Shown in pieces: positions 1 through 39,515 of a stretch of 64,000 nucleotides of DNA. The first letter of the stretch is position 1. Every line of letters starts with the position of its first letter. The stretch spans positions 1 through 64,000 of IMG/VR virus record IMGVR_UViG_3300042868_009074. One strand, given 5' to 3'. The notes under the pieces were generated by a model, which was not told the DNA's origin, made no database searches, and saw nothing but the letters and a program-made list of their open reading frames with translations. The position numbers were made by a program, and so were the translations under genes.

Positions 1-162
1 GGAACAAATAAGGCTATTGCATTTTGTCAAGACTGCCCCGTAAAAACACCATGTGCTTTATATGCTATTGAAAATAATATTAACCATGGTGTATGGGGCG
101 GTCTATCAATTCGTGCAAGAGCTGTTATCCGAAGAAATACTAAAATTAAATCACTCCACTAG
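1..162 (+). CDS. whiB: WhiB-family transcription regulator (5' truncated by window edge)
   Basis: Frame 1 reads GTNKAIAFCQDCPVKTPCALYAIENNINHGVWGGLSIRARAVIRR...*, with CxxCPVxxxC and GVWGG WhiB hallmarks. Confidence 0.9.
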   Translation, partial: GTNKAIAFCQDCPVKTPCALYAIENNINHGVWGGLSIRARAVIRRNTKIKSLH

Positions 163-971
163 ATAAGTAACAATAGAAGTAGAATGAATCATCGAGCCAG
201 ATTTGTAACAGGCCTTGGAAATGAATCACAATCACAAATTAGTAACATCTGTTGTAAATGAATCACCACAAGCAAATAAATAACATAGAGAATAAATGAA
301 TCATTGCATTTGACAAGTAACAATTTTTTCGAATGAATCAGAACGCACAATTTGTAACGATAAATGGAAATGAATCAACAAAACAAATTAGTAACATGGG
401 TGTTGAATGAATCACTGGAAGTAACAAGTAACACGAGCCGAAAATGAATCATTTGTCTGGATTAGTAACACATTATTAGAATGAATCATTAGCTTGGATT
501 AGTAACATATTATTAGAATGAATCAATCAAAACGAATTGTAACATTGTTCGCAAATGAATCAAAGCGCCTAACTAATACCATAGGAAGAAAATGAATCAC
601 TCCCTCAGAGAATACCATTTCCTTCGAATGAATCAATGGGATCAACTAATATCAATTAAACAGAATGAATCATCCAGTCGGACTTATATCATGACCAATA
701 AATGAATCATAGTTACGGACTTCTAACATATCTAGTAAATGAATCGCCACTCTTGACCTGTAACAAATCATGCGAATGAATCATCCTAAATTATAAACTA
801 TCACCAAAATGGAATGAATCACATTGTTCGATTAGTATCACAGTTATCAAATGAATCAGATCAAAAGAACTAGTATCACTACAACCAAATGAATCATTGA
901 TTCGGATTTATATCACAATAACAAAATGAATCATACCTATCTATCAGTAACATTAGAAGCGAATGAATCAA
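163..971 (+). repeat. Periodic array of 22 units (~37 bp): AATGAATCA-N12-14-(mostly R)TA(A/T/C)CA-N9, with unique spacers
   Basis: AATGAATC(A) starts at 183,220,257,295,332,369,406,443,480,517,554,591,627,664,701,738,775,813,850,888,925,962; second motif GTAACA/GTATCA/ATATCA/ATACCA at a near-fixed offset; half unit at 163-182. Confidence 0.95.
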
Positions 972-1024
972 ATTTGCAGTCTATGCAAAGATATGAAAAC
1001 AATATTAATACAAAAGGATAAATA

Positions 1025-1462
1025 ATGCTTCTATCTATGATGCTAATTCTTGCAGTCACTTCAACTCTTTTAGAGTTAATGATTGCTGCCAGAGTCCCAG
1101 CTTGGCGCAGACTTTCTGCTAAAAGCCCACTGTTTAATTTATTAAACTCATTGTTTATCTCATATATTATGGGTATAGCATTTGGTGCAGCTGGCCTCAT
1201 TGCCTTGGGTGCAGGTGTAATATCAACTGTACTCTCAGTACCTGGATATCAATTCCTTTATTGGAATTACGATAGCCCTATGGCAAAACGCCATGGTGGA
1301 AGTATGTATCAACATACATTCAAGAAATGGTCTACAACCATTACTGACTTCTTCCACCTTATCTATAAGATTTTACGAATTCTTACAGCTCCAATATGGA
1401 TCACTCGCGCAGCGATTGTGAAATATAACGCATTCAAAAATCGTAAATCTGCAATCGCTTAA
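1025..1462 (+). CDS. Hypothetical membrane protein (about 3 TM segments)
   Basis: 145-aa ORF with hydrophobic stretches; AAAGGA upstream. Confidence 0.7.
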   Translation: MLLSMMLILAVTSTLLELMIAARVPAWRRLSAKSPLFNLLNSLFISYIMGIAFGAAGLIALGAGVISTVLSVPGYQFLYWNYDSPMAKRHGGSMYQHTFKKWSTTITDFFHLIYKILRILTAPIWITRAAIVKYNAFKNRKSAIA

Positions 1463-1484
1463 TTTATTATTAAATATATCAAGC

Positions 1485-1510
1485 AAAAAAAGGGAAGAGA
1501 CAATCTTCCC
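1485..1510 (-). terminator. Hairpin GGGAAGA-gacaa-TCTTCCC with A-tract on its 5' side (terminator-like for - strand transcripts)
   Basis: Perfect 7-bp stem 1492-1510 preceded by A7 on + strand. Confidence 0.4.
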
Positions 1511-1542
1511 GCACAATCAATTTACTCAGGAGGTAAATAACC

Positions 1543-4074
1543 ATGGCAAATCGCCGTACCAACCGCACATATACACCTTCAGTACGTCTGCGGTCCATGC
1601 CACGTGGACCACTACGTTCTGTAAATAACTACCAGTTTGGATTCTATGACATTGGCGTTCTTCGCCACTGTCTTAACACCAGTAATCCTACAGAATATCG
1701 CGTAGCTGCACTGCCAATACCACAGAATGATATTGAGCTCAATGCTGCTAAGAAAATCATCCAACACCCAGCTGTTGAGTATGCCATTGTAGACAAGAAT
1801 AAGCTTGTTCTTACTCTCATAGATGGCAGCTCAAAAGGCTGGATGGGCAACCTCACCGAACTTGGCTACACAGTCAAGGGAGGTGGCAAGGCTGCCAAGC
1901 GTATGAAGTCATTTCATCGCCCAACTCTAATCAATGCTCACTTTGATCATCTCAACGTACAAATTGTTGAACCAACAGACTATTCTACGGTCGATTGGGC
2001 CAACGATGTATCTGACGATTATTCAACTCCAGAAGTCCTTGAGCGTCTGCTCGATGGCTGCTTCGTAGTCTCCTCGAGAATTATGAAGCAAGGCATTGAA
2101 AATCTACCAGTATATGAGCCATACAATACTCACGATACCGATGAGTATTATTATGACCCAAATATCCGTCGTCAACTTCAGAACTTTCTCGCAAATTCTA
2201 AAGTCTTTAATGCTCGCATTATTTGTAATCTCGGCACCATCAAGGGCAACATGATCGTATCTGATCGTTTGCCTGAAGGTATCGATGTAATCACAGCCCG
2301 TGCAAACATTAAGACCGAGGTTATCTATAACGGAGGTTATCGTTTACTCGCTGAGCCACAAGGCCCTAAGTCACGTGTTATCACTGACGATCAGACCGTA
2401 ATTAACTTTCCAAAGTTATTTCGTAAGTCTGAGATGGAAATGTGGCTTAAAGAAGAATATGAAAAGATGTTCCAAGATGCTATCAACGGTAAGTTGTTGC
2501 AGAACTGGAAGTCTATCTATACTCGACTTTGGCGAGACTCTGACGATATCGAAGATAAGGAAGTACAGGCTCGCATGAGCTATGTAGCATATCGTTGGGT
2601 AGCAGCAGGCTTGAATATTACGGATTCTCCGTGGCTATTTGAGAACCTTGCTATTTCACACGCTATGCCATTGCAAAAGCGTATACCCATTCCTTGTTCA
2701 GTCTATGAACAAATTATTCCAGAGTCTATTGCTCGCATGGCCGGCTATGACATTGATGTTGAAACTGAAACGATTCAACGTATCAATGAAATTGGCGTAC
2801 ATGTAGTAAATGACGTAGACTGGATTGAGATGTATGAATCTCATGGTGGTCACGACGCTGACGACTTCTTTAAGCTGTTCTACCGCCACATTGAAGGCGG
2901 AACATATGACGGAGAAAACGTAGTAATTGCTATTCGTTCACCGAATGGTAAAGGCGAGTATTCCGTATTTAAACATGTTGAAGGCCAATGGTCTCCAACG
3001 TGGGTAAAATCTAACGGAGAAGAAGTTAAGTTTCCTGTAGTAAATGGACGTGGATGGTCTACCAGATTATCCACAGCTATTCGCTTCAACGAAGTATCTT
3101 ACACTGGCTTGCCCTCTACATATCTCCCCTCAGATGCTCACGTATCTGAAAGCTATGACCACGCTCAAGTTATTGCTGACCTTCAGGCTGCAATGAACGG
3201 TGGCAATGTGGGACGCTATGTCAATGCAGTTATGCTGCATTCCATGGTATTTCCTAACCATCGTACTATGCAACTTTGTTCCTTAGAAGATGCTATTGAT
3301 GGGTGTACTCAAACTGCTGACCCAGCAGATCGTGCAGCCATCGATGAAGAAGCCAAAAAGCTTGTTCATGAAGTTATCGAGTCAGGTCGTCCTATCGACC
3401 GTGCCTTCTGGATGTCTCGTAACTTTAAGAACTCATTGAAGGAAGATCAAACAGTAGAACTATATGATGGAAAGATTACGCAAATTTATGATTTGTGTGC
3501 TCATTATTTCCAAGCATATCGTACTCGTGTAACCAAGTGGTCACAGGAAAACGCACGCCCAGATGATGCCATTCATCAGTTGGGTGCTCGTTTGTACTTC
3601 CATGCACTACCACACTTACGTCGTTTTCGTATGAATATCTACAATGCTAACTCAGCAGAAGTTATTCAGAACAACTCAAACGTACAACGTGATGCATGGG
3701 AAAACCTGTATCAAGGTATCATTGATACAATCGAAAGCTTTGAGAGAGCTCAGGATAAACATGACTTTGTCTTGTCATTATACTCTGCTTCTCTCAAGGT
3801 CACAACTTCTGGTGGGAAAATTTCCGACCAGATTGTTATGAATCGTATTGTTCATCCATATCTTGAACGAGCACTTCAGCACTACGGCTTAGCTAAACGT
3901 GTGATGATTGAGCGACGTCAAGACGGAACTCTTAATATTCAGCAAACAAAAGCTGATCAATGGACTTACAATCCTGATCAAGAAGAATCGAAAACTTTCG
4001 ATGACATCTTTGAATATCAGAAGTTCCACTCTAAACACTCACCCATTATTCACACAACATCCAACCGTGTATAA
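1543..4074 (+). CDS. Putative single-chain two-barrel RNA polymerase, RdRP(RNAi)/YonO-like, with a non-canonical GGHDADD catalytic loop
   Basis: Motifs LLDGCFVVS (cf. FSDGxGxIS), FNARI..GTIKGNMIV (cf. FQIR.GG.KGVL), TDDQTVIN (cf. LNRQ.I), GGHDADDF (cf. GSDLDGD), IRSPNGKGE (cf. KNPxxHPGD), GNVGRYVNA (cf. NLGxIxNA), EDAIDG (cf. AVDFxKTG); strong SD AGGAGG. Confidence 0.65.
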   Translation: MANRRTNRTYTPSVRLRSMPRGPLRSVNNYQFGFYDIGVLRHCLNTSNPTEYRVAALPIPQNDIELNAAKKIIQHPAVEYAIVDKNKLVLTLIDGSSKGWMGNLTELGYTVKGGGKAAKRMKSFHRPTLINAHFDHLNVQIVEPTDYSTVDWANDVSDDYSTPEVLERLLDGCFVVSSRIMKQGIENLPVYEPYNTHDTDEYYYDPNIRRQLQNFLANSKVFNARIICNLGTIKGNMIVSDRLPEGIDVITARANIKTEVIYNGGYRLLAEPQGPKSRVITDDQTVINFPKLFRKSEMEMWLKEEYEKMFQDAINGKLLQNWKSIYTRLWRDSDDIEDKEVQARMSYVAYRWVAAGLNITDSPWLFENLAISHAMPLQKRIPIPCSVYEQIIPESIARMAGYDIDVETETIQRINEIGVHVVNDVDWIEMYESHGGHDADDFFKLFYRHIEGGTYDGENVVIAIRSPNGKGEYSVFKHVEGQWSPTWVKSNGEEVKFPVVNGRGWSTRLSTAIRFNEVSYTGLPSTYLPSDAHVSESYDHAQVIADLQAAMNGGNVGRYVNAVMLHSMVFPNHRTMQLCSLEDAIDGCTQTADPADRAAIDEEAKKLVHEVIESGRPIDRAFWMSRNFKNSLKEDQTVELYDGKITQIYDLCAHYFQAYRTRVTKWSQENARPDDAIHQLGARLYFHALPHLRRFRMNIYNANSAEVIQNNSNVQRDAWENLYQGIIDTIESFERAQDKHDFVLSLYSASLKVTTSGGKISDQIVMNRIVHPYLERALQHYGLAKRVMIERRQDGTLNIQQTKADQWTYNPDQEESKTFDDIFEYQKFHSKHSPIIHTTSNRV

Positions 4075-4089
4075 AATTGGCTATTCAAA

Positions 4090-4135
4090 ACTGGGGAGAC
4101 GAGCTCGTCTCGTCTTCCCAGTAGGTCTATTTTTT
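4090..4135 (+). terminator. Intrinsic terminator downstream of the polymerase gene
   Basis: ACTGGGGAGACGAG-ctcgt-CTCGTCTTCCCAGT stem, then aggtctattttttc. Confidence 0.65.
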
Positions 4136-4160
4136 CATATATAACCCAAAGTAGGTAACT

Positions 4161-4517
4161 ATGTTAACATTCAATCATTATAGAATCGATCCTAATTCAT
4201 GGATTGATGATCTTCAAGCCCAAGTACACATGAGGGAATTATTTCCTGAAATGTATATGGCTGAAGAAATTAAACCAAAAAATCTTATCAGTAAGATTTC
4301 TTATAAAGCAGGCTCTCTGACTGCTGGTACTAAAAACTTTTTTTCAAAAACGGAAACTAAAACAGCTACACTAATGGCTTATTGGGCTGCTGACTCACTA
4401 GTAGGGTTAATGCTTATGCTAACCACTACCAGCTCAATTGCTTTTGTTGTTGCTTTTGCTATGATTATTCTTCATACCTATGCTACCTTTAGCATTGTAT
4501 CAGAAGTAACTAAATAG
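4161..4517 (+). CDS. Hypothetical membrane protein
   Basis: 118-aa ORF with C-terminal hydrophobic segments; AGGT upstream. Confidence 0.7.
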   Translation: MLTFNHYRIDPNSWIDDLQAQVHMRELFPEMYMAEEIKPKNLISKISYKAGSLTAGTKNFFSKTETKTATLMAYWAADSLVGLMLMLTTTSSIAFVVAFAMIILHTYATFSIVSEVTK

Positions 4518-4528
4518 ATTTTAATTAT

Positions 4529-5143
4529 ATGCTAGAAATCCCTGATAATATTAGTAAATTTATTACTAATATGTCTTCTGAAATAGAAGCCATTAAACAC
4601 ACTTTTGTATCCACTACTGAAAAAGAGAAAGACAGCTTCAAACCATTTGCTGTATTCTTCTCTGATCCCGATACAAAATCTTTTGTTATAACATCTAGAC
4701 CTATCTACGATGCTAACGATTATTATACAGCTGTATCAGAAATGTTATTTGCATACTCTGCTAATGACTCTGAAGCTGTATTATTTGCAGTTGACTCAAA
4801 TAAAGAGATTAACGGCGTCACCCATGATTTACTTGAAGTATACATGGCTTGTAACGACTACTGCGCTATCTTTAGTTTTCCTTACTCATTAGATGATAAT
4901 CTCAAATTCCATTGGAATGAAAATTTATTTGACACCCACAGTATGGAAACACTAGAAAAAGCTTATGATACAAGTGGACAATTCCACGCAAGCTTAGAAA
5001 TATTCGAAGCTTTGTATCTCCACACTCATATGCGTATCCAGCATTTTGATATTGGAAAACTTAAATCTTTCTATGATGCTAATAATTTTAATTATGCGCA
5101 TCTACTAGAGCACAGCTCTAAACAAACTACCCTAACCTTATAA
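4529..5143 (+). CDS. Hypothetical protein
   Basis: 204-aa ORF packed in the + strand gene run. Confidence 0.75.
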   Translation: MLEIPDNISKFITNMSSEIEAIKHTFVSTTEKEKDSFKPFAVFFSDPDTKSFVITSRPIYDANDYYTAVSEMLFAYSANDSEAVLFAVDSNKEINGVTHDLLEVYMACNDYCAIFSFPYSLDDNLKFHWNENLFDTHSMETLEKAYDTSGQFHASLEIFEALYLHTHMRIQHFDIGKLKSFYDANNFNYAHLLEHSSKQTTLTL

Positions 5144-5164
5144 ACAGAAAACACACAAAGACAC

Positions 5165-5317
5165 ATGTTAACTTTAGAAAAAGAAAATGTGATTCTTTGG
5201 GAGGCAGAATCAATAATCAAGAATGTTGTTATAGTTGAAGAATCTATACTACATCAAATAGAAAAATATATGCAGGACGAAGCCTTCTATGGCGATCCTG
5301 ATTTTTCTTATTATTAA
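5165..5317 (+). CDS. Small acidic hypothetical protein (50 aa)
   Basis: Manual translation MLTLEKENVILWEAESII...YGDPDFSYY*; fills gap between genes. Confidence 0.5.
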   Translation: MLTLEKENVILWEAESIIKNVVIVEESILHQIEKYMQDEAFYGDPDFSYY

Positions 5318-5337
5318 TATTAAGGTATAATATAAAT

Positions 5338-7011
5338 ATGACAATCATATTGCGACCATATCAAGAAGAAGCTCTTAACGCTATTTTAGAAAATTGTTCT
5401 AAAGGCGTTTCTAGGCAGCTTGTTGTACTACCTACGGGCGCAGGTAAAACAGTCATATTTTCACACCTTCCAATTATTAAACCAGACGCATTACCCATGC
5501 TAGTTCTAGCTCATCGTAGCGAATTGTTGGATCAAGCCAGAAATAAAATTATGGCTTCTAATCCACATCTTAGCGTAGAAATAGAACAAGCAGAGCGTAA
5601 AGCCGGTCAGGTTGACGTAGTTGTGGCATCTGTTGCCACTCTAGGTCGAAATAATACTCCTCGTATAGAGGAATACCCCAAGGATTATTTTAAATCCATA
5701 GTTATAGATGAGGCCCATCATGCTGCTGCTCCTAGTTATCGAAGAATTATTGACTTTTTCTCTCCTGATTTTCTCTTGGGCGTTACTGCGACGCCGCAAA
5801 GATCGGATTCTACTAGGTTAATTGACGTATTCCAAGAAATCGTCTACTATAAATCTATCCAAGATCTAATTGGAGAAGGCTATCTCTGCCCACTTGTTGG
5901 CTACAGAGTTAAATCAAACATAGACATTTCTAATGTCGAAATCAGAAACGGTGAATATGCACAAGATCAACTTGAAGAAGCTATTGATACTCCTGAGCGT
6001 AACGCTCATATCGTCGCTAGCTACCTTGCTTTGGCTAGTAATGAAAAGGCCATTGTATTCGCATCCGGCGTCAAGCACGCCGAAAACTTGGCCCTATCCT
6101 TTATCCAAGCGTCGGTAACGACAGAAGTGATAGTTGGGACTACTCCTCGAGAAAAAAGAGAAGAGGTCCTTGCGAATTTTGCCAAGGGCAAGGTTTCGGT
6201 TATTGTAAATGTAGGCGTTTTAACTGAAGGGTTCGACGAACCATCAGTCCAAGCTATTATACTAGCTAAACCCACTCGTTCAACTCTATTGTATACACAA
6301 ATTGTTGGACGTGGAACTCGCCTACATGAAAGCAAAGTATCTTGCAAAATAATCGACATTGCAGACACCACAAGAGGAAAGAAGCCTATTGGCCTTCCTA
6401 CTCTGTTGGGTCTTCCCCCAGAATTCGATTTAGAAGGACAGAGTCTAACAGACGTAGCTGAAAAGTTTAAAGAACTTGAAGACTTCTGCCCCGGTGAATC
6501 AGTTCGTGTTCTTAATCCACAAGACATTGAACTAGCATATACTAGAATTAACCTCTTTATGCCACCACCACCTAACCCCACTGTGCTAGAATATTCTAAA
6601 CTTGTTTGGGCTGAAGTAGGGGAAGATGACTATTATCTTGGTGTTTCTAATGGTGAGTCTCTTAGGATACATGCTGACACACTAGGCAGGTGGAATGTTA
6701 CCCTTAAAGATTCTAATACTAAAGAAGTAAAAATTCTTGGCATTACTGAAACTATGAGAGAAGCATTCGCTCGCAGTGATCGTTGGGTTCAAAACCACAG
6801 AACTTCAGCTATGAGCCTATTGGATTCATCCGCCACTTGGCGAGCAGATGGACCAACAGATTCTCAGCAAAAACTTCTCAAAAGAATAGGTATACCCTTA
6901 ACGTCAGACATGACTAAAGGTATGGCTAGTCAAATTATCTCTCGTTACTACGAGAGTAATCCCAAGCCTAAATGGCTTCAAAATAAAATATCTTATAAAA
7001 ATAAATGGTAA
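5338..7011 (+). CDS. Superfamily 2 DEAD/DEAH-box helicase (Irc3/ResIII-like)
   Basis: LRPYQ Q-motif, PTGAGKT, DEAHH, TAT, LTEGFD, QIVGRGTR; TATAAT 6 nt before ATG. Confidence 0.92.
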   Translation: MTIILRPYQEEALNAILENCSKGVSRQLVVLPTGAGKTVIFSHLPIIKPDALPMLVLAHRSELLDQARNKIMASNPHLSVEIEQAERKAGQVDVVVASVATLGRNNTPRIEEYPKDYFKSIVIDEAHHAAAPSYRRIIDFFSPDFLLGVTATPQRSDSTRLIDVFQEIVYYKSIQDLIGEGYLCPLVGYRVKSNIDISNVEIRNGEYAQDQLEEAIDTPERNAHIVASYLALASNEKAIVFASGVKHAENLALSFIQASVTTEVIVGTTPREKREEVLANFAKGKVSVIVNVGVLTEGFDEPSVQAIILAKPTRSTLLYTQIVGRGTRLHESKVSCKIIDIADTTRGKKPIGLPTLLGLPPEFDLEGQSLTDVAEKFKELEDFCPGESVRVLNPQDIELAYTRINLFMPPPPNPTVLEYSKLVWAEVGEDDYYLGVSNGESLRIHADTLGRWNVTLKDSNTKEVKILGITETMREAFARSDRWVQNHRTSAMSLLDSSATWRADGPTDSQQKLLKRIGIPLTSDMTKGMASQIISRYYESNPKPKWLQNKISYKNKW

Positions 7012-7012
7012 T

Positions 7013-8530
7013 ATGAAAAATAAAAAAGCATCAATACTAATAACAGCTTTACTTTTGTTTTCTACACAAAGTAATCTAATCTTTAATTCTAACCCTGTTC
7101 AAGCTAAATCTATTTCTAGCGTTAAGAAACGGGCTTATAAGAATATAAAGCTTGAGAAACGTATTGTTAAGAAGAAATCAGTAACTGTTTATCGTAAATT
7201 CTTAGATACATCAGTTCCTTACATAGGCGCTGATACAGCACATGCTTCTTCTAACAAAGGCAAAGGCACTTACGTAGTATTGATTGACACTGGCGTCAAT
7301 GTCGACCACCCCATGCTCAAAGGTAGAGTAGCTCTAGAAGCTTGCTTTACCTTATTTCGTTCATGCCCTAATGGCACTAACCAACAAACTGGAACAGGAG
7401 CAGCTGCACCTGTAGACTGGCATGGCTCTCACGTATCCGGCATTATGGCAGGATCTTATCAACAATATGTAGGCGTTGCTCCAGAAGCTAAGATTATAGC
7501 TATTAATGTATTCGATAAAGATTTATCTTCATCTGAAACAGCTATAACTTTAGCCTTAAATTGGGTTAACTCTATATCTAGGGACTATAATATAGCTTCA
7601 GTTAATATGAGTCTAGGAACTAGCAGAATATATCAAGGTTATTGTGACACAGTCTCTCCTAAAATGACTACTGCTGTTAAGAATTTGTATGACAAAAATA
7701 TAGCAGTAGTAGTGGCTGCTGGAAACTCGTATGCTTTAGGCATGAGTAGCCCAGCTTGCATTAGCTATTCAGTTAGCGTAGCTTCTATGACTTATGATGG
7801 TTATGTAAATGATTTTTCTAACTTATCTAAAAATACTACATTTGCTGCTCCTGGCTATCGAATTGTATCAGCTGGAGCTGGAACCACTATGAGAGCTGCC
7901 ACAGGCACATCTATGGCTGCTCCTCACGTAGCTGGTATATTTTCTATTTATAGACAAATGTACCCAACTCATACTTTACAGCAAGCCATTAATAGAATAA
8001 AAGCTAGCTCTAAAATAGCTACTGACTATTACTCTGATATTAAGATTTCAGCTATCAACATAGCTACACTATCCAATATAGAAGATAGCCCGACTACCAC
8101 AAGTAGTACAACTACCTTACCTTGGATTAATCCCCCAACTACAACTACGCTTCCAGTAACTACTACTACTTTACCAGAAACAATTGTTACTACAACTGTT
8201 CCTTCAGTTCCAGTAGTTACCACTACAACTATTGTATCTAAATTACCTTTATTTAAGCCAACTGATCTAAAGCTCCGTGCTTTAAAAATTAATTCAACTT
8301 ACTTTTACTTATCTTACAGTGATTCTACTGTTGATAAAACATTAGTTAATGATTACACTTTATCGTGCAACGATGGCTCTAAGTTTCCAGTTTCTTTAGA
8401 ATTAAATTATAACTCTCATGTGATTAAAGTAATGTCAAACATTGCTTTTACTTCATGTTATCTTTATGCCAATTTAGAAAATGGCACAACTAGTGCTAAT
8501 AGTTCACCTGCTATCATAACTTATGGATAA
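7013..8530 (+). CDS. Secreted S8 subtilisin-like serine protease with Thr/Pro-rich linker
   Basis: Signal peptide; catalytic motifs IDTG, HGSHV, AAGN, GTSMAAPHV. Confidence 0.92.
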   Translation: MKNKKASILITALLLFSTQSNLIFNSNPVQAKSISSVKKRAYKNIKLEKRIVKKKSVTVYRKFLDTSVPYIGADTAHASSNKGKGTYVVLIDTGVNVDHPMLKGRVALEACFTLFRSCPNGTNQQTGTGAAAPVDWHGSHVSGIMAGSYQQYVGVAPEAKIIAINVFDKDLSSSETAITLALNWVNSISRDYNIASVNMSLGTSRIYQGYCDTVSPKMTTAVKNLYDKNIAVVVAAGNSYALGMSSPACISYSVSVASMTYDGYVNDFSNLSKNTTFAAPGYRIVSAGAGTTMRAATGTSMAAPHVAGIFSIYRQMYPTHTLQQAINRIKASSKIATDYYSDIKISAINIATLSNIEDSPTTTSSTTTLPWINPPTTTTLPVTTTTLPETIVTTTVPSVPVVTTTTIVSKLPLFKPTDLKLRALKINSTYFYLSYSDSTVDKTLVNDYTLSCNDGSKFPVSLELNYNSHVIKVMSNIAFTSCYLYANLENGTTSANSSPAIITYG

Positions 8531-8971: not shown

Positions 8972-9054
8972 ACCCGAGTGGCGGAATGGCAGACGCAGGG
9001 GGCTTAAACCCCCCGGAGGGCAACCTCTTACCGGTTCAAGTCCGGTCTCGGGTA
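8972..9054 (+). tRNA. tRNA-Leu(TAA)
   Basis: ACCCGAG/CTCGGGT acceptor stem, GGGGG-CT TAA AC-CCCCC anticodon arm, long variable arm, TTCAAGT T-loop; followed by CTA not CCA. Confidence 0.93.
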
Positions 9055-9079
9055 CTACAAATATAGAAAAGGAAATAAA

Positions 9080-9547
9080 ATGACCGAATTAACCCCACCA
9101 CTTCCTAATATGGATTCACCTAGATCCACAAACGGAATGAAGCAAATGGGAATCATTATGATTCTTCTTGCAGCCGTAGCTTTGCTTATTGGCATTCTCA
9201 TTGCATCACGCGATAACTCATCTGCTCCCGCAGCAACCAATGCTCCAGTCCAAACTTATGCTCCAGCTCCAGTTGTCAACAAGTATGAAGCTTATCTTGA
9301 CCATGTTTACAATAACTCTGGTCAAGCTAATACAATTACTAAAGCTTCTCTTATTGAATATGGCGATACTATTTGTTCTGCCTTAGATAATGGTAGAACA
9401 ATTCCTTATATCGTAGATTATCTTTCAAATAGTTCTTCTAGCGAAACCGATGCTGCTTTGTATGCCTCAGTAATCTTTGGAGCAATTACATATATCTGTG
9501 ATGAATACAAAGGTGATCTTAACCTTTATCTTTCTAACTCTAACTAA
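9080..9547 (+). CDS. Membrane-anchored DUF732-like protein
   Basis: N-terminal TM helix, Ala/Pro linker, YGDTICSALDNG...AITYIC two-Cys pattern typical of actinobacterial DUF732. Confidence 0.6.
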   Translation: MTELTPPLPNMDSPRSTNGMKQMGIIMILLAAVALLIGILIASRDNSSAPAATNAPVQTYAPAPVVNKYEAYLDHVYNNSGQANTITKASLIEYGDTICSALDNGRTIPYIVDYLSNSSSSETDAALYASVIFGAITYICDEYKGDLNLYLSNSN

Positions 9548-9816
9548 TGAAAAAATTCATTAGTAATTTAATTCCAAAAATCAGACCATTTACTGATGGA
9601 TTTGATTACGGTATTAAACATCACAAGACAATTGAAGATCATCACTTCTTCACTTATCCATATGGTTCAGATGAATATAAATTGTTCAAAAAACAAAATG
9701 ATCTTTATCGTAAAGGCATACGTATAGCAAGAGTATATTCTCGCTATAGAAATGAAATTCTTTTACTTATATATGTATTATCGACAGCATTGATATTTTC
9801 ACGCTGCGGTTGGTAA
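9547..9816 (+). CDS. Hypothetical protein with C-terminal TM
   Basis: 89-aa ORF coupled by TAATG. Confidence 0.65.
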   Translation: MKKFISNLIPKIRPFTDGFDYGIKHHKTIEDHHFFTYPYGSDEYKLFKKQNDLYRKGIRIARVYSRYRNEILLLIYVLSTALIFSRCGW

Positions 9817-9822
9817 ATACTT

Positions 9823-9895
9823 TCCCAGATAGCTCAGTTGGCAGAGCAGCGGACTGTTAATCCGCTTGTCGTAGGTTCGAGCCCTACTCTGGGAG
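9823..9895 (+). tRNA. tRNA-Asn(GTT)
   Basis: Canonical cloverleaf TCCCAGA/TCTGGGA, GCGGA-CT GTT AA-TCCGC. Confidence 0.95.
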
Positions 9896-9897
9896 CT

Positions 9898-10101
9898 ATG
9901 ACAAAATCTAAATATGACATGTCTCACCTACTAGGTAGACGTATAGAAATAATTACTTGCACCGATAGATACACTAATCTTGTTCCTGGCTCTCAGGGAA
10001 CAGTAACTGCGGTAGATTCCAACGGAACTGTATTCGCAAAATGGGATACTGGCTCTATTCTAGGCCTCATCCCTGGCGTTGATACCTGGAAATATCTATG
10101 A
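9898..10101 (+). CDS. DUF4314-like small protein (start reassigned to ATG 9898; upstream part of the listed ORF is the tRNA)
   Basis: GRRIE...TDRYTNLVPGSQGTVTAVDSNGTVFAKWDTGSILGLIPGVD pattern. Confidence 0.75.
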   Translation: MTKSKYDMSHLLGRRIEIITCTDRYTNLVPGSQGTVTAVDSNGTVFAKWDTGSILGLIPGVDTWKYL

Positions 10102-10390
10102 TCACTAATATAGTATTGTTATTAAATACTATATTTGCATTGTTTATTATAAGAATAATATACGATGCTATCAAACATAAAGGATAAAATGTTACATTAT
10201 ATTCAATCACTTATTACTCGTTATTCTTTTAAGCGTACTGCTAGACAACGTTATAAATCTTATAACAAAATACATCAAACTCCTTATGGAGTTCCCACTA
10301 GAAATCAAGGTTATTACGAATGAAAGATATACTAATCATATTAGTTATTGCAGGTGTTCTAACTTTTATAGTAGAAAAACTTTGGAAGCC

Positions 10391-10558
10391 ATGACATATA
10401 TTAAAATGCACGTAAAAGATAAACTGGACATTATTGCCCATGTTTTAACTCGCAACGGAGTTACTGTTTGGTATGGTATACCAGAACAAATAGTAGCTGA
10501 GCTTAAAGCTAATGGTTACAAAATTAAAAAACGTAAATCTTTTTCTAAAAATATTTAA
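10391..10558 (+). CDS. Small hypothetical protein
   Basis: Likely start at internal ATG of listed ORF 10286..10558. Confidence 0.55.
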   Translation: MTYIKMHVKDKLDIIAHVLTRNGVTVWYGIPEQIVAELKANGYKIKKRKSFSKNI

Positions 10559-10573
10559 CAACACCATACACCC

Positions 10574-10646
10574 GCGCCTTTAGCTCAGTTGGTAGAGCAG
10601 TGGACTTTTAATCCATGTGTCCCGGGTTCGACCCCCGGAGGGCGCA
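10574..10646 (+). tRNA. tRNA-Lys(TTT)
   Basis: GCGCCTT/AGGGCGC acceptor stem, GTGGA-CT TTT AA-TCCAT. Confidence 0.95.
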
Positions 10647-10648
10647 CT

Positions 10649-10927
10649 ATGACAAATGAACTAAACTCATTAAACGAACTTACAATTGGTGATATCGTAG
10701 GTGACACTAATCGTATCGTTATTGCCTGCACTAAAAAAGCAGAAAGAATTCCGGATGACTCTTATGCATATTGGGTTACCATATGCTTTAAAGAACAAGA
10801 GTATCATCCGTACGTAGTATGGAATGTTATTGCTCGTCCCGAGGGTTTTAGTTCCGTTGAAGGAGATTACTACTTTACTCTGGAAGAAGCTTTAATCCAA
10901 TACAAAAAACGTGGGGGAGAAGCTTAA
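10649..10927 (+). CDS. Hypothetical protein (start reassigned to ATG 10649)
   Basis: ATG begins 3 nt after the tRNA-Lys discriminator; upstream part of listed ORF is the tRNA. Confidence 0.7.
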   Translation: MTNELNSLNELTIGDIVGDTNRIVIACTKKAERIPDDSYAYWVTICFKEQEYHPYVVWNVIARPEGFSSVEGDYYFTLEEALIQYKKRGGEA

Positions 10928-11071
10928 TGAATAACTTAACTCTCACCAATATGATTGACCAGACTATCACCGATATCTCTGGTCAAAACTTTGTCCCCAC
11001 AGAAAAAATTATAGATCTATTATTAGATATTAGATTACACTTACTTATACAGGAAGAAGCAACACCCACTT

Positions 11072-11272
11072 ATGAAAGTTAAACTTAACGTAGAAATTCA
11101 TGCTGATATTCCAGGCGAATTTCAAGATGACGCAGATGCAGTTCAATTACTTCAAGAAGAAATAAACGAACGCTTTGAGATCAATTATGAATATGATAAA
11201 GGCGATCAACCTTCAGTTATGTTCGAATCAGCTCAAATTAAGATTTACATCCCAGGGGCAGGTAAACTATAA
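11072..11272 (+). CDS. Small acidic hypothetical protein
   Basis: 66-aa ORF in packed small-gene run. Confidence 0.6.
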   Translation: MKVKLNVEIHADIPGEFQDDADAVQLLQEEINERFEINYEYDKGDQPSVMFESAQIKIYIPGAGKL

Positions 11273-11564
11273 TGTGCTCAGGCTCAATAGAACAGCATGA
11301 TCTCGATCAATTAGAGCGGGAATTAGAAGAAAAAAAAGCTGTAGATAATTATGTTAATAACTACAGAGTATCTTTTTCTACTTTTAGCTTATTAGTTCCA
11401 TCTTTACGTGATTAATGCCATGCAGTGATGTGCAATCACTAAACATTTTGGGAGCTAACAGTCCCCATTGCTACGGGATCTTATTCGTTTACGACTAGCC
11501 CGTCCACAAAGTGGACATACCAATTCACCTTTTCCCCTAGACCAGGTGGCCACAACTGTCCTAC

Positions 11565-11638
11565 GGGCCCTTAGCTCAGTCGGTTAGAGCATCGGACTCA
11601 TAATCCGTGTGTCCTGGGTTCGAGCCCCAGAGGGCCCA
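11565..11638 (+). tRNA. tRNA with CAT anticodon (Ile2-like or elongator Met)
   Basis: GGGCCCT/AGGGCCC acceptor stem, TCGGA-CT CAT AA-TCCGT; no C1:A72 mismatch, so not initiator. Confidence 0.92.
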
Positions 11639-11782
11639 CTATGAACTTTATTATTTCATTTCTTGAACTCATTGTTATTTTATTAAATACAACAGTCTTC
11701 TTTAGATTTTTATTTATATCATTAGCAATGACTCTATACCTATACTCAGTCAAAAATATACGAACACAAAAGGAATACCCTA

Positions 11783-12097
11783 ATGACAAACACAATCCAT
11801 ACCCCTGAAGCTGCTCTTAAACATTATAAGATTCAACCAGCTTCTGATTCAGATTTTCCATACACTAAAGTTGGTTCTGAAATATACAATGCTGTTGTTA
11901 TACAGTTTATTGATATGGCTGATGATTTAGCTAAGAGTTTAAATAATAAACTTAAATTAGATTATCAAATTTCATCTCTTGATATACTTGATTCTCTAGC
12001 TACTGTTGGCCTAGAGCTTAATGTATTTGAAGAAGATCTTACCGAATACAACTGGCCATCTCTTGCCTATTTGGAAATTCTCAAAGAGAAAAAATAA
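11783..12097 (+). CDS. Hypothetical protein
   Basis: 104-aa ORF, AAGGA upstream. Confidence 0.7.
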   Translation: MTNTIHTPEAALKHYKIQPASDSDFPYTKVGSEIYNAVVIQFIDMADDLAKSLNNKLKLDYQISSLDILDSLATVGLELNVFEEDLTEYNWPSLAYLEILKEKK

Positions 12098-12360
12098 TGC
12101 CTTACATAGAGCAAGATGATCGTGTCTTTTTAGACCAAAGGGTTACATTTAACAATAATGCAATTCAAACTCCTGGCGAATTAAATTATGCTATTACTAA
12201 ACTATTAGATCACTACATTAGCTCTCATGGTTTATCCTATACCAACATCAATGAAGCCATTGGTGTGTTGGAGTGCTCTAAGATGGAATTATACCGTCGT
12301 ATAGCTGTTCCCTATGAAGATATTAAGATGCAAGAAAACGGAGACGTTTATACCGTATGA
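12097..12360 (+). CDS. DUF6899-like phage protein
   Basis: MPYI...GELNYAIT...NEAIGVLECSKMELYRR.AVPYED.K..ENGDVY pattern. Confidence 0.75.
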   Translation: MPYIEQDDRVFLDQRVTFNNNAIQTPGELNYAITKLLDHYISSHGLSYTNINEAIGVLECSKMELYRRIAVPYEDIKMQENGDVYTV

Positions 12361-12536
12361 GTAATAGAGTAAACGTTACCGCTCATGTATATAAGCCATC
12401 TACTGTCTATTATCCTGATAGTTCTAGACAATGTGCTCATGCAGATTGTACCACTCGTCTTTCGATGTATAACTCTACAGAATATTGCTGCACTCATGAA
12501 CGTCAATATCGCAATCTATATGTATATAAGGATTAA
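12357..12536 (+). CDS. Small Cys/His (zinc-finger-like) protein, 59 aa
   Basis: Manual translation includes CAHADCTTRLSMYNSTEYCCTH; ATGA-coupled. Confidence 0.6.
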   Translation: MSNRVNVTAHVYKPSTVYYPDSSRQCAHADCTTRLSMYNSTEYCCTHERQYRNLYVYKD

Positions 12537-12538
12537 TT

Positions 12539-13009
12539 ATGGGAATGGATGTTTACGGCGTTAAGCCTAAAAACGAAGCTGGAGAATACTTTCGCTCCAA
12601 TGTTTGGTTCTGGCACCCTTTATGGGATTGCCTAGAAAACCTTCATCCAACACTGTGTGAGAAGTGCGAATCTCCTCACGACAATTCAGGCTCTGGCCTT
12701 AATGCTAGAGACTCTTTAGCTTTATCTAAGCTTTTAAAAAAAGATTTAGATTCAGGTGTTATCGAAGAATATATTAAAAAATATTATGAAGCTATTGCTT
12801 TAGTTCCTCTTGATGATTGCAAGTTTTGCGACAACAAGGGTACTCGAGACTGGCCTTCTGATGATGGCACAGTCCTCACTAAGCAATGCAACGCTTGTGC
12901 AGGAACTCTCAAAGTTGCTAACTTTGTTACTCATTATCATATGGACATTGAGCTCATGAAAGAGTTTCAAATCTTTCTTGAAAACTGTGGTGGATTTACA
13001 ATTTGTTAA
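12539..13009 (+). CDS. Conserved phage protein with CxxC zinc-ribbon insert
   Basis: MGMDVYG...FRSNVWFWHPLW; CKFC and CNAC. Confidence 0.75.
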   Translation: MGMDVYGVKPKNEAGEYFRSNVWFWHPLWDCLENLHPTLCEKCESPHDNSGSGLNARDSLALSKLLKKDLDSGVIEEYIKKYYEAIALVPLDDCKFCDNKGTRDWPSDDGTVLTKQCNACAGTLKVANFVTHYHMDIELMKEFQIFLENCGGFTIC

Positions 13010-13245
13010 TCAAACCCAAGAACCCTCCTGCTTCTCCTCCTCTCCCTATCAGAGAAAGAATACTTGCCAAATACCATAATGATCTCACCATGATGGATCA
13101 CATAGATGCCTTTGTTCTATACGAAGCAGCTATGCATAAACTATATGTTAAGGTTAACCCCTGGCTTGCCAGAAATAAGTATGGCAAACCTTCGAGAACT
13201 AGAACTCGAAAAGATTTTGAGCCTAAAGAGGAAGCTTATGATTAG
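13003..13245 (+). CDS. Hypothetical protein
   Basis: 80-aa ORF, TTG start. Confidence 0.55.
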   Translation: MLIKPKNPPASPPLPIRERILAKYHNDLTMMDHIDAFVLYEAAMHKLYVKVNPWLARNKYGKPSRTRTRKDFEPKEEAYD

Positions 13246-13455
13246 CTCCCTTTAGCCAAATAGATTTATAGCAGCTAGTGAATTCAAACTTACTACGTGG
13301 TAAAACACAGAAATAAGCCGACTGAATTGCTAACTAAAAGCAATGATGCTAGTGGCCCCATATCGCCCCATTGCCTGCTATAATTAGTTTAAAGGATAAA
13401 ACATGTCTTCACCCTTATTACATTATCGAATACCCACCCTACTTCTCGTTTTCAC

Positions 13456-13529
13456 GAGCTAGTAGCTCAGTTGGTAAGAGCATCATTCTTATAAAATGAA
13501 GGTCCGGGGTTCAATCCCCCGTTAGCTCA
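13456..13529 (+). tRNA. tRNA-Ile(TAT)
   Basis: GAGCTAG/TTAGCTC acceptor stem, TCATT-CT TAT AA-AATGA, CGGGG-TTCAATC-CCCCG. Confidence 0.88.
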
Positions 13530-13554
13530 CAATTAAAATTTATTAGGAGAAATC

Positions 13555-17916: not shown

Positions 17917-19572
17917 ATGTCTAACGATACTAAGGAAATAAAAACCATCACTTTAGATGATTTAAATTACTTTTGGATGCCTAACGGTGCTCCATGCTTT
18001 ATCGCCAATAACTATGATGTTGTTGATGATTACTGCGATACTGTTGAAAGTTTTGGCTTTCAAATTTATTATATCATAACCGATAAAGAAACAAGTAAAA
18101 CTGTTCAAGTCAAAAACGACAAAGGAGTTATGATTCCAACTGAAGTATATGATTATACTCCAGCTGTATTTAAAGTTGTTAATAACTTTACAGGTCGTGC
18201 CGTCATGGAATCCAAAGAACCTTTCGGTACTTCATTCTGCCCAGTAAAAGAAGTAGCAGAGTATACTATGCCTTCAATTCCTCGGATTATTATCGATAAA
18301 CTTGATGAGTTCTTTAGATTAGTTCATGCTCAGCATGGCACTGAGTCTATTGTTATCTTGACTTATGATACCACTAAAGAAGGTTCTGAAGGTTGGGGCG
18401 TCTTAGTCCCCGAGCAAGAGAACAACTCTGTTCACTGCAAGTATGACAATGATTCTATTGCTGCTATTAAACCAGATCATGTCATGATTGTTGGCTCTGT
18501 CCACAGTCATCCTGAGATGTCGGCATATGCTTCTGGTACAGACCATGAAGACCAAGCTGACTTTGATGGCATCCATATTACTTATGGCTGGCAAAAATCA
18601 GTTAATGCTGGAGCTACCCAGTATCACTTGGAGCTTCAGATTGGTGGTTCTAACTATGTACTCAAACCTGAAGATGTATTTGAATACAACCCTCCTCCCA
18701 CTAAGGACCCTGACCCAGAGGTTCTAGAGTGGAGCTCTAAAGTAAAAAAAGTATCCCCCCCGCTTATGGGGGTTTCGGGTACTCAGGTGGCGCATACACC
18801 AAGCCAGTCGTACCAGGCAAGTTGGGCTCTTCAAGCGACCAACTCTCGACCTATTCAAGCTGGTATGGATACGATTAGTTCTTTCGATAGAACTAAATTC
18901 ATATCTGACCTAGGTACAGTTGAAGCAGATGCTGTAGTTGCTATAGAAATAGATGATTCAACTAATCCAGATCGCAACTGCTTGATCTGTTATTTTCCTC
19001 TAACTTTAGCTGATCTCAACACTGGCTTCTGCATGACTTGTGATACTCCTATAATCACTCCAGAAATGGGTCATAGAGATATTCTAGCATTCCTAGACTA
19101 TTACTGTGACCAACGTGCTTTGGATCCTACAGTTCCTTATTATGTTTACTGCATGGATGAAAATAATAATTCAAATAACTTTTTGATTAATATTAAATCT
19201 GCTGGTCAAATTTCTAATCTAGAAGATCCTGAAGTAGAATTATATTCTGGTGCTGACTTTCTAGAGTATACAGTTTGCTGCAGTACGCCATTAACTATGG
19301 TGGAACTGTGCAAGTGCACTGTTACTGTCTTAGAGGAACACGTTGCTGACTTTGACAAAGCACACAAGGAAGTAGACATCTATGATTCTACTGACGACTG
19401 CTTGTCATGTGATAGTTATTATCAAACTTCATGTCCTCAATTTAAAAATGCTTTAGTTAATTATGTAACTTATAATTCTATTGTAAATGTTCAAATAAAA
19501 AAATGCGACAACTATGTCTATTATAAAGACTTAACTGCCGTCAATAATTTCGAAAGTACTTATTATGACTGA
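17917..19572 (+). CDS. JAB/MPN+ metallo-isopeptidase with C-terminal Cys-rich domain (possible -1 frameshift isoform ending at 18878)
   Basis: HGTES (Glu) and GSVHSHPEMSAYASGTD JAMM motif; CLIC, CMTC, CLSC in the C-terminal part. Confidence 0.85.
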   Translation: MSNDTKEIKTITLDDLNYFWMPNGAPCFIANNYDVVDDYCDTVESFGFQIYYIITDKETSKTVQVKNDKGVMIPTEVYDYTPAVFKVVNNFTGRAVMESKEPFGTSFCPVKEVAEYTMPSIPRIIIDKLDEFFRLVHAQHGTESIVILTYDTTKEGSEGWGVLVPEQENNSVHCKYDNDSIAAIKPDHVMIVGSVHSHPEMSAYASGTDHEDQADFDGIHITYGWQKSVNAGATQYHLELQIGGSNYVLKPEDVFEYNPPPTKDPDPEVLEWSSKVKKVSPPLMGVSGTQVAHTPSQSYQASWALQATNSRPIQAGMDTISSFDRTKFISDLGTVEADAVVAIEIDDSTNPDRNCLICYFPLTLADLNTGFCMTCDTPIITPEMGHRDILAFLDYYCDQRALDPTVPYYVYCMDENNNSNNFLINIKSAGQISNLEDPEVELYSGADFLEYTVCCSTPLTMVELCKCTVTVLEEHVADFDKAHKEVDIYDSTDDCLSCDSYYQTSCPQFKNALVNYVTYNSIVNVQIKKCDNYVYYKDLTAVNNFESTYYD

Positions 19573-20320
19573 TCAAAAACGTTTTGTTCTTGTTGGAGCT
19601 GGTGGCATTGGCACTTGGCTTGCAGCTGGACTTGCTCGCATGTTAGAGTTTAAATATCCTGGCTCTGCTCTTATTATCGTCGATGGTGATACATATGAAG
19701 AACGGAACAAAGAGCGTCAATCATTTTCTCAGATGGGAAACAAAGCAGTTGCTACTGCCCATGACTTGACCCAACAGTTTCCTAACACTATGTTTATCCC
19801 AGTCCCTAAATGGGTTGTTGACGACAACTTTGGTGGAGTCACAGATGATCAAGATTCTCCTAAAATTAAAGCTTCTGCTTTGATTACCGAAAACGATGTA
19901 GTCTTTGCTGTTGTTGACAACTTTGCTGCTCGTAAGATTATCTTTGATGCTGCTCAAAACTTAGACAACGTTGACATCTTTACTGGTGGCAACGATGACG
20001 CTTTATTTGGTAGTGTTTATCATTACCAACGCCGTGATGGTCACGATGTAACTGACCATCCAGTGCATACTCATTCTGAATATGAAAATCCTCCAGACAA
20101 AAATCCTGGTGAATTATCATGTCAAGATCGTGCCAAAATCGAAGGTGGTACTCAGCTATTGGCTACCAATATGGCTGTAGCTGCCTTCCTTCTTGGTCGC
20201 GTACAAAAGACAATTGTGTCTAATCAAAATCCCGACGAAGCAGAAATTTATTTTGACCTTGGTATCGGCAAGTCCGAACCATATGATCGTCGACCAACCC
20301 TACAACCTGTAGTACAATAA
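19565..20320 (+). CDS. ThiF/E1-like ubiquitin-like protein activating enzyme
   Basis: GAGGIG, VDGDTYEERNKERQ, DNFAAR, candidate catalytic Cys in LSCQD. Confidence 0.9.
   Translation: MTDQKRFVLVGAGGIGTWLAAGLARMLEFKYPGSALIIVDGDTYEERNKERQSFSQMGNKAVATAHDLTQQFPNTMFIPVPKWVVDDNFGGVTDDQDSPKIKASALITENDVVFAVVDNFAARKIIFDAAQNLDNVDIFTGGNDDALFGSVYHYQRRDGHDVTDHPVHTHSEYENPPDKNPGELSCQDRAKIEGGTQLLATNMAVAAFLLGRVQKTIVSNQNPDEAEIYFDLGIGKSEPYDRRPTLQPVVQ

Positions 20321-39439: not shown

Positions 39440-39515
<76 letters not shown>

Follow-up and report, generated by a model that had tools for sequence, protein, structure and literature searches.

A predicted two-barrel RNA polymerase family of uncultured phages in which a DxDD loop precedes the conserved Arg-x-Pro loop

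An unannotated protein of 843 residues, encoded by an uncultured, probably actinobacterial, phage, is predicted to fold like the YonO and RNAi-type RNA polymerases, but its presumed metal-binding loop reads DxDD and is located before, not after, the conserved Arg-x-Pro loop. The gene occupies positions 1543–4074 (+) of the window, i.e. the 64,000-nucleotide stretch analysed (positions 1 to 64,000 of IMG/VR record IMGVR_UViG_3300042868_009074). The protein belongs to a large family known only from metagenomes (231 clusters at 90% identity; 275 at 50%). The signature used as a filter by Chaban et al. 2024 (PMC10770324, Suppl. Data 4), i.e. [RK]xP followed after 20–100 residues by DxDxD, is matched by only 19 of 241 members, at scattered non-homologous positions, so that published motif filters for this superfamily would miss the family. 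In contrast, 236 of the 241 members have DxDD followed 15–40 residues later by RxP.

The open reading frame is intact, running from an ATG at 1543 to the stop codon ending at 4074. An AGGAGG ribosome-binding site lies at 1528–1533 (+), 9 nt before the ATG, and a 14-pair terminator-like hairpin at 4090–4122 (+) just after the gene. A short GC hairpin at 1492–1510 (−), with its T-run on the minus strand, separates the upstream membrane-protein ORF from the polymerase gene. The motifs listed in a preliminary description made from the sequence alone were all found where it had placed them, namely DGCFVVS (residues 171–177), FNARIICNLGTIKG (222–235), TDDQ (281–284), GGHDADD (435–441; nt 2845–2865, with DADD at 2854–2865), RSPNGKGE (465–472; nt 2935–2958), NVGRYVN (555–561) and AID (584–586), and the Asp loop does precede the RSP segment. 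The observation reported there is thus confirmed. In an alignment of 66 sequences reaching down to about 20% identity, the invariant columns are K119, D171, G172, K234, G435, D438, D440, D441, R465, P467, G557 and D586. Eleven of these 12 fall within the 50 motif residues of that description (hypergeometric P 1.2e-13), as do 19 of the 34 columns that are at least 90% conserved in 241 sequences (P 1.2e-16), which is far beyond chance.

Sequence searches did not connect the family with any known polymerase family. Pfam, PHROGs and NCBIfam gave no match for the query or for 48 diverse members; neither did a PDB sequence search with the single sequence and with the profile, nor tblastn of the query and of two distant members against 50,697 GenBank phage records. 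Relatives of YonO carry Pfam PF05183, whereas this family does not. Alignment of the family profile with a YonO-family profile by hhalign was not significant (best E 0.04–0.2, with non-homologous segments), although three of the twelve weak local alignments are the expected motif pairs DG/DG, Q/Q and RSP/RSP; the best, though non-significant, local matches pair Q284 with YonO Q406 and RSP465 with RSP492. Of the collinear motifs of the RdRP/YonO-like proteins (DG..S, R..KG, Q, RxP, DxDGD, G...N and xD), all are present and conserved and six of the seven are collinear, the Asp loop being out of order and reading DxDD. An hhalign comparison of residues 376–455 with 456–540 revealed no internal repeat. 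A scan of 185,579 species genomes gave four loci, all on contigs from metagenome-assembled genomes of unrelated taxa; these are probably mis-binned phage contigs and indicate neither a host nor a prophage.

The assignment to the fold class is supported by structure prediction. The AlphaFold model (pLDDT 90.2, pTM 0.90) matched by Foldseek the plant RDR2 (7w82, E 4.5e-7; a further match at 1.3e-6; TM 0.34–0.43, with 7rqs at TM 0.43 over 873 columns) and the non-virion RNA polymerases gp64 of Thermus phage P23-45 and gp62 of P74-26 (8f72 and 8f5m; E 9e-6 to 5e-4). Generic double-psi beta-barrel (DPBB) proteins appeared among the weak whole-model hits (ranks 8–13), and a viral protein predicted as an RNA-dependent RNA polymerase was found in BFVD. 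Furthermore, the conserved residues correspond one-to-one to the functional residues described for QDE-1 (PMC9508822).

The helix 117–125 (1888–1917, +), with K116, the invariant K119 and R120, is the probable counterpart of the duplex-binding/DPBB1 auxiliary helix, the analogy to QDE-1 R671 (D1AH) being an inference. The first, beta-like barrel (residues about 130–272; 1930–2358, +) contains D171-G172, R225, K234-G235 and K257, corresponding to D709, R738, K743 and K767 of QDE-1. Of these, R225 (93%), K234 (99%) and K257 (98%) are conserved on a hairpin, as in QDE-1, their orientation towards the Asp loop being presumed by analogy only. The TDDQ segment (2383–2394, +), with Q284 conserved at 96%, resembles the NRQ motif containing QDE-1 Q797. 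A bridge-helix-like segment (3205–3249, +) carries G557 (98%) and N561 (92%) and is matched to the bridge-helix residue N1087 of QDE-1, and a trigger-loop-like segment, E582..A584-I-D586 (3286–3300, +), corresponds to V1115-D1116 of QDE-1; a covariation pair 436-582 was also detected.

The Asp-loop domain (residues 380–501; 2680–3045, +) consists of strands 382–383, 386–393, 410–414 and 419–422, helix 424–434, the DxDD loop and strands 442–451, 458–465, 474–478 and 499–501. In the GGHDADD loop (2845–2865, +), D438, D440 and D441 are 100% conserved in 241 members. These three acidic residues lie on a loop after a helix and enter a beta strand, as in other two-barrel polymerases, but with spacing i, i+2, i+3. 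A beta-hairpin of strands 442–451 and 458–465 (2866–2937, +), the tip of which varies in length across the family, joins the Asp loop to R465; the DxDD-to-RxP spacing is mostly 18–23 residues (23 in 119 sequences and 18 in 57), and covariation pairs 445-461, 445-463 and 450-460 were found. The segment R465-S-P467-N-G-K-G471-E472-Y473 (2935–2961, +) is the probable Pro-gate (R-x-P) loop, in which R465 and P467 are 100% conserved and G471, E472 and Y473 are conserved at 92–93%. It has the same RSPxxxxE spacing as YonO R492..E499.

The preliminary description assumed that the RxP segment normally comes before the Asp loop, which is correct: YonO has RSP492..DNDGD535, gp64 NRRP..ADYDGD and the E. 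coli beta-prime subunit RAP425..NADFDGD458, and in the archaeal DNA polymerase D (PolD) the Asp loop lies between strands 5 and 6. In the present model at most four strands, one of only two residues, precede the Asp loop after about 100 residues of helices, and at least three follow it, which does not agree with a canonical six-stranded double-psi barrel having the Asp loop between strands 5 and 6. The domain folded alone (pLDDT 92.8) gave no significant match to any PDB structure (best E 0.77); the only DPBB or polymerase rows were a p97-Ufd1-Npl4 entry at E 1.3 and a Pol II entry at E 6.6 (TM 0.10), although Foldseek may simply be insensitive to small barrels with insertions. Covariation (Neff about 140–150) places the RSP loop next to the Asp loop (pairs 436-472 and 434-474, involving E472 and S474) and closes the hairpin 458–465/474–478 (pair 460-477). 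Since the strand pairing rests on secondary structure and on this shallow covariation, which gives three apparent partners for strand 442–451, it cannot fix a topology; non-canonical wiring of the catalytic barrel is likely, but a true circular permutation is not shown. The interpretation given in the preliminary description is thus only partly supported: membership of the RNAi-RdRP/YonO/phage single-chain two-barrel class holds, and DxDD is invariant in the family, but homology to YonO is not seen at the sequence level, and of the proposed circularly permuted barrel only the reversed order, together with indications of non-canonical wiring, could be supported.

The gene most probably encodes, although with a likelihood only somewhat better than even, an active single-chain two-barrel nucleotide polymerase of the YonO/QDE-1/P23-45 gp64 class, presumably a DNA-dependent RNA polymerase transcribing part of the phage genome. 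[quoted passage not shown] The catalytic barrel appears to be wired differently from every described member: the helix-plus-Asp-loop unit comes first, the strand following it turns back as a simple hairpin, and the returning strand ends in the invariant R-S-P loop. This would bring the metal-binding aspartates and the ribose-sensing Arg/Pro together as in canonical enzymes, but through a different chain order. Family conservation, fold class, motif order and the lack of a sequential match for the Asp-loop domain are established by the analysis, whereas catalytic activity, template type, the exact strand topology and the genes transcribed are inferred. The phage setting agrees with this view, with genes for WhiB, a helicase, SSB and eight tRNAs, and TerL on related contigs. 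No promoter motif for a phage polymerase was found in the window, a crude k-mer scan of upstream regions giving only A/T-rich low-complexity words and a sigma-70 scan being at chance level. An upstream 37-nt array was considered as a dispersed promoter motif and rejected, since its box occurs outside the array only at about chance level. Rfam gave nothing on positions 1–5400, and no second polymerase-like gene is present in the window.

Among the alternatives, canonical wiring is unlikely but survives best. R380-I-P382 would then be the true Pro-gate loop, RSPNGxGEY would be the counterpart of a post-catalytic Pro-containing segment (ILSPANGEP of beta-prime; IVPLYYE of YonO), and DxDD would be the only real novelty. 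The [RK]xP lies 56 residues upstream of the Asp loop, inside the canonical spacing window, and P384 is 92% conserved; strand 419–422, helix 424–434, the Asp loop and strand 442–451 fit the canonical strand5-helix-loop-strand6 pattern; beta-prime has SPANGEP 28 residues after NADFDGD; and YonO has invariant P562, Y564, Y565 and E566 about 23 residues after DNDGD. On the other hand, position 380 is only 70% R plus 19% K and P382 is 78% conserved, whereas R465 and P467 are 100% conserved, and no beta strand precedes R380 for about 100 residues, leaving too few strands for a canonical barrel ahead of the Asp loop. Of the upstream [RK]xP..P..C segment only C385 gave a coupling, to the distal end of strand 442–451 (pair 385-449), while the RSP loop couples with the Asp loop. 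Moreover, the segment between the Asp loop and RSP is a hairpin, not the strand plus helix inferred for beta-prime and YonO from their sequences alone, and the isolated domain has no DPBB match.

It is also unlikely, and slightly more so, that the protein is a two-barrel enzyme with another role, such as a replication primase, a DNA polymerase or an RNA-templated RNA polymerase. The gene sits beside an SF2 helicase and near SSB, UDG-like and nucleotide-metabolism genes, QDE-1 uses both DNA and RNA templates, and PolD shows that the fold can make DNA. No primase or DNA polymerase was recognised among the ORFs scanned (about 40 of about 97 called in the window), but the window covers only part of the genome and this absence means little. 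Against such a role, the invariant Arg of the R-x-P loop reads ribose 2'-OH groups in QDE-1 and RNA polymerases, the helicase adjacency is lost in distant members, and the characterised phage relatives, YonO and gp64, are DNA-dependent transcriptases. A catalytically dead structural or regulatory derivative, suggested by the missing DxDxD signature and the lack of a sequence match to active families, is very unlikely, since conservation across 241 sequences down to about 20% identity is concentrated on exactly the residues forming the active site in QDE-1, a pattern typical of an active enzyme.

Two-barrel polymerases carry out all cellular transcription, and their catalytic signature, R-x-P and then DxDxD between strands 5 and 6 of a double-psi barrel, is treated as universal and used as a search filter. 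A large, well-conserved phage family that keeps every functional residue but changes both the Asp spacing and the order of the elements bears on how constrained the active-site architecture really is, how small beta-barrels can be rewired in evolution and how many phage transcription enzymes current surveys miss. It also offers a compact new enzyme, inferred from sequence, for transcription studies in abundant uncultured phages that are probably actinobacterial. It is possible, although slightly less likely than not, that this family is the first natural two-barrel polymerase whose catalytic barrel has a different strand order, with the helix-Asp-loop-strand unit hairpin-linked upstream of the R-x-P strand and the metal ligands reading DxDD. 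The universal RNA polymerase active site would then be rebuilt on a rewired small beta-barrel, a living example of the barrel-fold interconversions (DPBB, RIFT and related folds) so far shown only by protein engineering (PMC11258233), and motif-based surveys would have overlooked an abundant phage polymerase lineage.

Among known systems, YonO of the Bacillus prophage SPbeta, a single-chain DNA-dependent RNA polymerase (Forrest et al. 2017, PMC5467207), is likewise phage-encoded and about 840 residues long, and shares the DG, R..KG and Q motifs, the RSPxxxxE loop and the bridge- and trigger-like motifs in the same relative order, as well as the probable role as a phage transcriptase. Its DNDGD, however, lies 43 residues after RSP, whereas here DxDD lies 24 residues before it, and YonO ends in a Cys4 ribbon that is absent here. 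The eukaryotic RNAi RNA-dependent RNA polymerases QDE-1 and RDR2 are the best structural matches, with a one-to-one correspondence that also covers R962-x-P964, the Asp triad and D1116, but the identity is about 10%, the order of the Asp and R-x-P loops is reversed, DxDD replaces DxDxD, the Asp-loop domain is not sequentially superposable and the source is a phage, not a eukaryote. The gp64 and gp62 enzymes (PMC10770324) are also single-chain phage two-barrel RNA polymerases encoded among early-type genes, but no sequence similarity to them was detected, and gp64 has the canonical order and is about 230 residues shorter. Finally, PolD (DP2), which does not appear among the structural hits, shares a two-barrel catalytic core with a non-standard Asp signature of two invariant aspartates, but it keeps the Asp loop between strands 5 and 6, makes DNA and is multi-domain with Zn modules.

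The open reading frame at window positions 1543–4074 (+) is one uninterrupted frame of 843 codons, with AGGAGG lying nine bases before the ATG and a 14-pair terminator-like hairpin following directly at 4090–4122. Every motif listed in the preliminary description was found at the residue and nucleotide positions assigned to it, including GGHDADD at residues 435–441 (nt 2845–2865) and RSPNGKGE at residues 465–472; the observation itself is real and, given the conservation of these motifs, far beyond chance. The gene is not an orphan, since a word-indexed search found 231 clusters at 90% identity and an exhaustive HMMER search found 275 representatives at 50% identity, all of them from metagenomes and, where they carry a name, called hypothetical. 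In a 66-sequence alignment reaching about 20% identity, the invariant columns are K119, D171, G172, K234, G435, D438, D440, D441, R465, P467, G557 and D586, and eleven of these 12 lie inside the 50 motif residues singled out beforehand (P 1.2e-13). In 241 full-length members, D438, D440, D441, R465, P467, K119 and G172 are 100% conserved.

Sequence comparison did not relate the protein to any described family. No Pfam, PHROG or NCBIfam family was found for the query or for 48 diverse members, no PDB sequence was matched even with the family profile, and no tblastn match was obtained in 50,697 GenBank phage records for the query or for two distant members. In contrast, structure prediction with the family alignment gave a confident model (mean pLDDT 90.2, pTM 0.90), for which the only significant PDB matches by Foldseek were maize and Arabidopsis RDR2 (E 4.5e-7, 1.3e-6 and 7.7e-6; TM up to 0.43 over about 870 columns) and the non-virion RNA polymerases of Thermus phages, labelled in the PDB as phage P32 gp64 and P74 gp62 (E 9e-6 to 5e-4). 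Weak hits further down the list are generic double-psi barrels, namely formylmethanofuran dehydrogenase subunit D, the p97 N domain and expansin. In the viral library the model matched an uncharacterised protein of an 'uncultured Caudovirales phage' at 61% identity and, more weakly, a phage protein named RNA-dependent RNA polymerase.

The residues that build the active site of QDE-1 (PMC9508822) each have a conserved counterpart in the present protein, and all but the Asp loop come in the same order along the chain. [quoted passage not shown] R465-S-P467 corresponds to R962-x-P964 of the Pro-gate loop, which reads 2'-OH groups and the minor groove, while D438, D440 and D441 correspond to the metal-binding D1007, D1009 and D1011. 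Finally, N561 corresponds to N1087 of the bridge helix and D586 to D1116 of the trigger loop. Furthermore, K116, K119 and R120 lie on a helix just before the first barrel, where QDE-1 has its auxiliary helix. By predicted fold and by active-site inventory the protein therefore belongs to the single-chain two-barrel polymerases, i.e. the RNAi RdRP / YonO / gp64 clade of Chaban et al. 2024.

The window starts inside a WhiB-type gene (1–162, +), the stop codon of which is at 160–162; its C-terminal C-x-x-C..GVWGG motif is directly readable, and the syntenic genes in L001, L006 and L007, three contigs of relatives, are Pfam WhiB. Downstream of the polymerase gene and nearby lie an SF2 helicase, an S8 protease, SSB, a UDG-like protein and nucleotide-sugar enzymes. 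Eight tRNA genes (Leu-TAA, Asn, Lys-TTT, Met, Ile-TAT, Arg-TCT, Gly-TCC and Ser-GCT; 8972–13530, 30190–30262, 39440–39515 and 58616–58710) are scattered singly between small ORFs rather than clustered. The order WhiB, small membrane protein, polymerase, three small ORFs, helicase is kept at 63–88% identity but is lost in distant members. Related contigs reach about 200 kb and carry a lytic transglycosylase (SLT), DUF732 and an Rv2632c-like protein and, in a distant member, a large terminase and PhoH. A scan of one genome per species (185,579 species genomes) found only four loci (L011–L014), all on MAG contigs, assigned to Cyclobacteriaceae, Acidibacter, Limnohabitans and Saccharibacteria; these taxa are mutually inconsistent, which suggests phage contigs mis-binned into MAGs, and the scan gave no evidence of a prophage in a cultured organism. 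The element is best read as a large lytic phage of low-G+C (about 36%) bacteria that are probably Actinobacteria, the host assignment being an inference from the other actinobacterial-type genes and mainly from WhiB.

Between the WhiB gene and the small membrane-protein ORF upstream of the polymerase lies a tandem array with a 37-nt period (145–970, +; also at 9164–9412 of L006). It has 21 exact AATGAATCA boxes, most of them followed 13 nt later by GTAACA or a close variant, with variable sequence in between and all on one strand. A relative with an 88%-identical polymerase has the same array in the same place but with only about 6–7 units. Outside the array the box occurs at about chance level, and the array is not CRISPR-like and has no Rfam match; iterons or an origin, a centromere-like site or a protein-binding sponge may be considered as candidate roles. 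Elsewhere in the window, neighbouring ORFs carry a prokaryotic JAB deubiquitinase-like domain (17917–19572, +), a ThiF/E1-like domain (19565–20320, +) and an AAA ATPase (20696–22312, +), with an HslV-family peptidase 10 kb further on (32096–32704, +), which together suggest a phage-encoded ubiquitin-like or proteasome-like module. The S8 subtilase (7013–8530, +) and a 429-aa ORF (30335–31624, +) share Thr/Pro-rich linker repeats, with ACTAC-type DNA repeats at 8133–8226 and 30843–30928. Sugar and nucleotide-modification genes at 39539–42525 (+) and 53322–54692 (-), comprising a 2OG-Fe(II) oxygenase-like protein, a glycosyltransferase, a nucleotide-sugar epimerase and a HAD hydrolase fused to a nucleotidyl transferase, may serve DNA or surface glycan modification. 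A 1025-aa ORF with no family match (48298–51375, -) carries internal 51–57-nt (17–19 codon) repeats around 49129–49611 and lies in a block (about 42–52 kb) whose G+C (0.41–0.44) is clearly above that of the rest of the window (about 0.35).

The preliminary description had pointed to two oddities, a DxDD loop and its position before the RxP segment, and had proposed a circularly permuted catalytic barrel. Both oddities hold in the family. The loop reads G-G-x-D-x-D-D in all members, the residue between the aspartates being free (Q, A, L, E, G and others), and in 236 of 241 members DxDD is followed 15–40 residues later (mostly 18–23) by RxP. The proposed interpretation, however, is only partly supported. 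Four lines of evidence favour non-canonical wiring. Firstly, about 100 residues of helices (281–381) precede the Asp loop, followed by only strands 382–383, 386–393, 410–414 and 419–422, whereas strands 442–451, 458–465, 474–478 and 499–501 come after the loop, so that a barrel with five strands before the loop and one after is not available. Secondly, residues 372–540 folded alone with a 145-sequence alignment are confident (pLDDT 92.8), yet Foldseek found no significant PDB match (best E 0.77); the only DPBB or polymerase rows were a p97-Ufd1-Npl4 entry at E 1.3 and a Pol II entry at E 6.6 (TM 0.10), and the other weak top entries include small five-stranded barrels. The whole-protein hits are therefore carried by the rest of the molecule. 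Thirdly, the distance between DxDD and RxP takes mainly two values, 23 (119 sequences) and 18 (57 sequences), which is the behaviour of a β-hairpin whose tip length varies while its base is fixed, and the hairpin base would place the aspartates next to R465 and P467.

Fourthly, covariation (mean-field and pseudo-likelihood, Neff about 140–150) recovers the 442–451/458–465 hairpin (pairs 445–461, 445–463 and 450–460) and a hairpin 458–465/474–478 that closes the RSPNGKGE loop (460–477, 463–475 and 469–472), as well as contacts between the Asp loop or its helix and E472/S474 (436–472, 434–474 and 434–472), from G436 to E582, and from I464 to residue 289 beside the Q motif. These pairs fit the convergence of these elements on one site, although the covariation is too shallow to settle the strand order around the barrel, as strand 442–451 shows three apparent partners. 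The best local profile alignment with the YonO family pairs the strand plus RSP465 with the strand plus RSP492, although it is not significant, and the RSPxxxxE spacing is identical in the two families. What the analysis itself shows is the conservation of the motifs, their order, the similarity of the predicted fold and the lack of a sequential structural match for the Asp-loop domain, while the wiring of the barrel, the catalytic activity, the template type, the role in transcription and the host are inferred. On this evidence a rewired catalytic barrel is likely, if by no wide margin, whereas a circular permutation in the strict sense is unproven, and a relocation of the helix–Asp-loop–strand unit to a hairpin in front of the R-x-P strand describes the data equally well.

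A canonical reading survives. An upstream [RK]-[IV]-P-[IV]-P-C motif (R380 70% R plus 19% K, P382 78%, P384 92%) lies 56 residues before the Asp loop, and it resembles the first-strand RIxIP element of RdRPs, a resemblance that is no more than a lead. Moreover, β′ carries ILSPANGEP 28 residues after NADFDGD, and YonO has an invariant P..YYE about 23 residues after DNDGD. Against this reading, R465 and P467 are more strongly conserved than R380 and P382, no strand precedes R380, and C385 couples to the far end of strand 442–451 and not to the Asp loop.

By analogy with YonO, which transcribes late genes, and gp64, which transcribes early and middle genes, the most likely role is DNA-dependent transcription of phage genes, and the invariant Arg of the R-x-P loop fits ribonucleotide use. 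No candidate promoter consensus and no second polymerase gene were found in the window. A primase-like, RNA-templated or DNA-synthesising role is not excluded by the data.

The family is unannotated in every library searched. Published surveys treat DxDxD as the signature of two-barrel polymerases, and the supplementary table of Chaban et al. was filtered on '[RK]xP, 20–100 residues, DxDxD'; this filter misses the family, since the canonical pattern occurs in only 19 of the 241 members, at scattered non-homologous positions. The family differs from all described two-barrel polymerases in two defining features, the spacing of the aspartates and the order of the two loops, whereas the functional residues are kept, and only a different barrel topology, if real, would make this a categorically new architecture. 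The characterised relatives all have the opposite order to that found here: in YonO RSP492 is followed by DNDGD535, in gp64 NRRP by ADYDGD, in E. coli β′ RAP425 by NADFDGD458–464 and in QDE-1 R962 by D1007, and in PolD and the RNA polymerases the Asp loop follows a helix between the fifth and sixth barrel strands.
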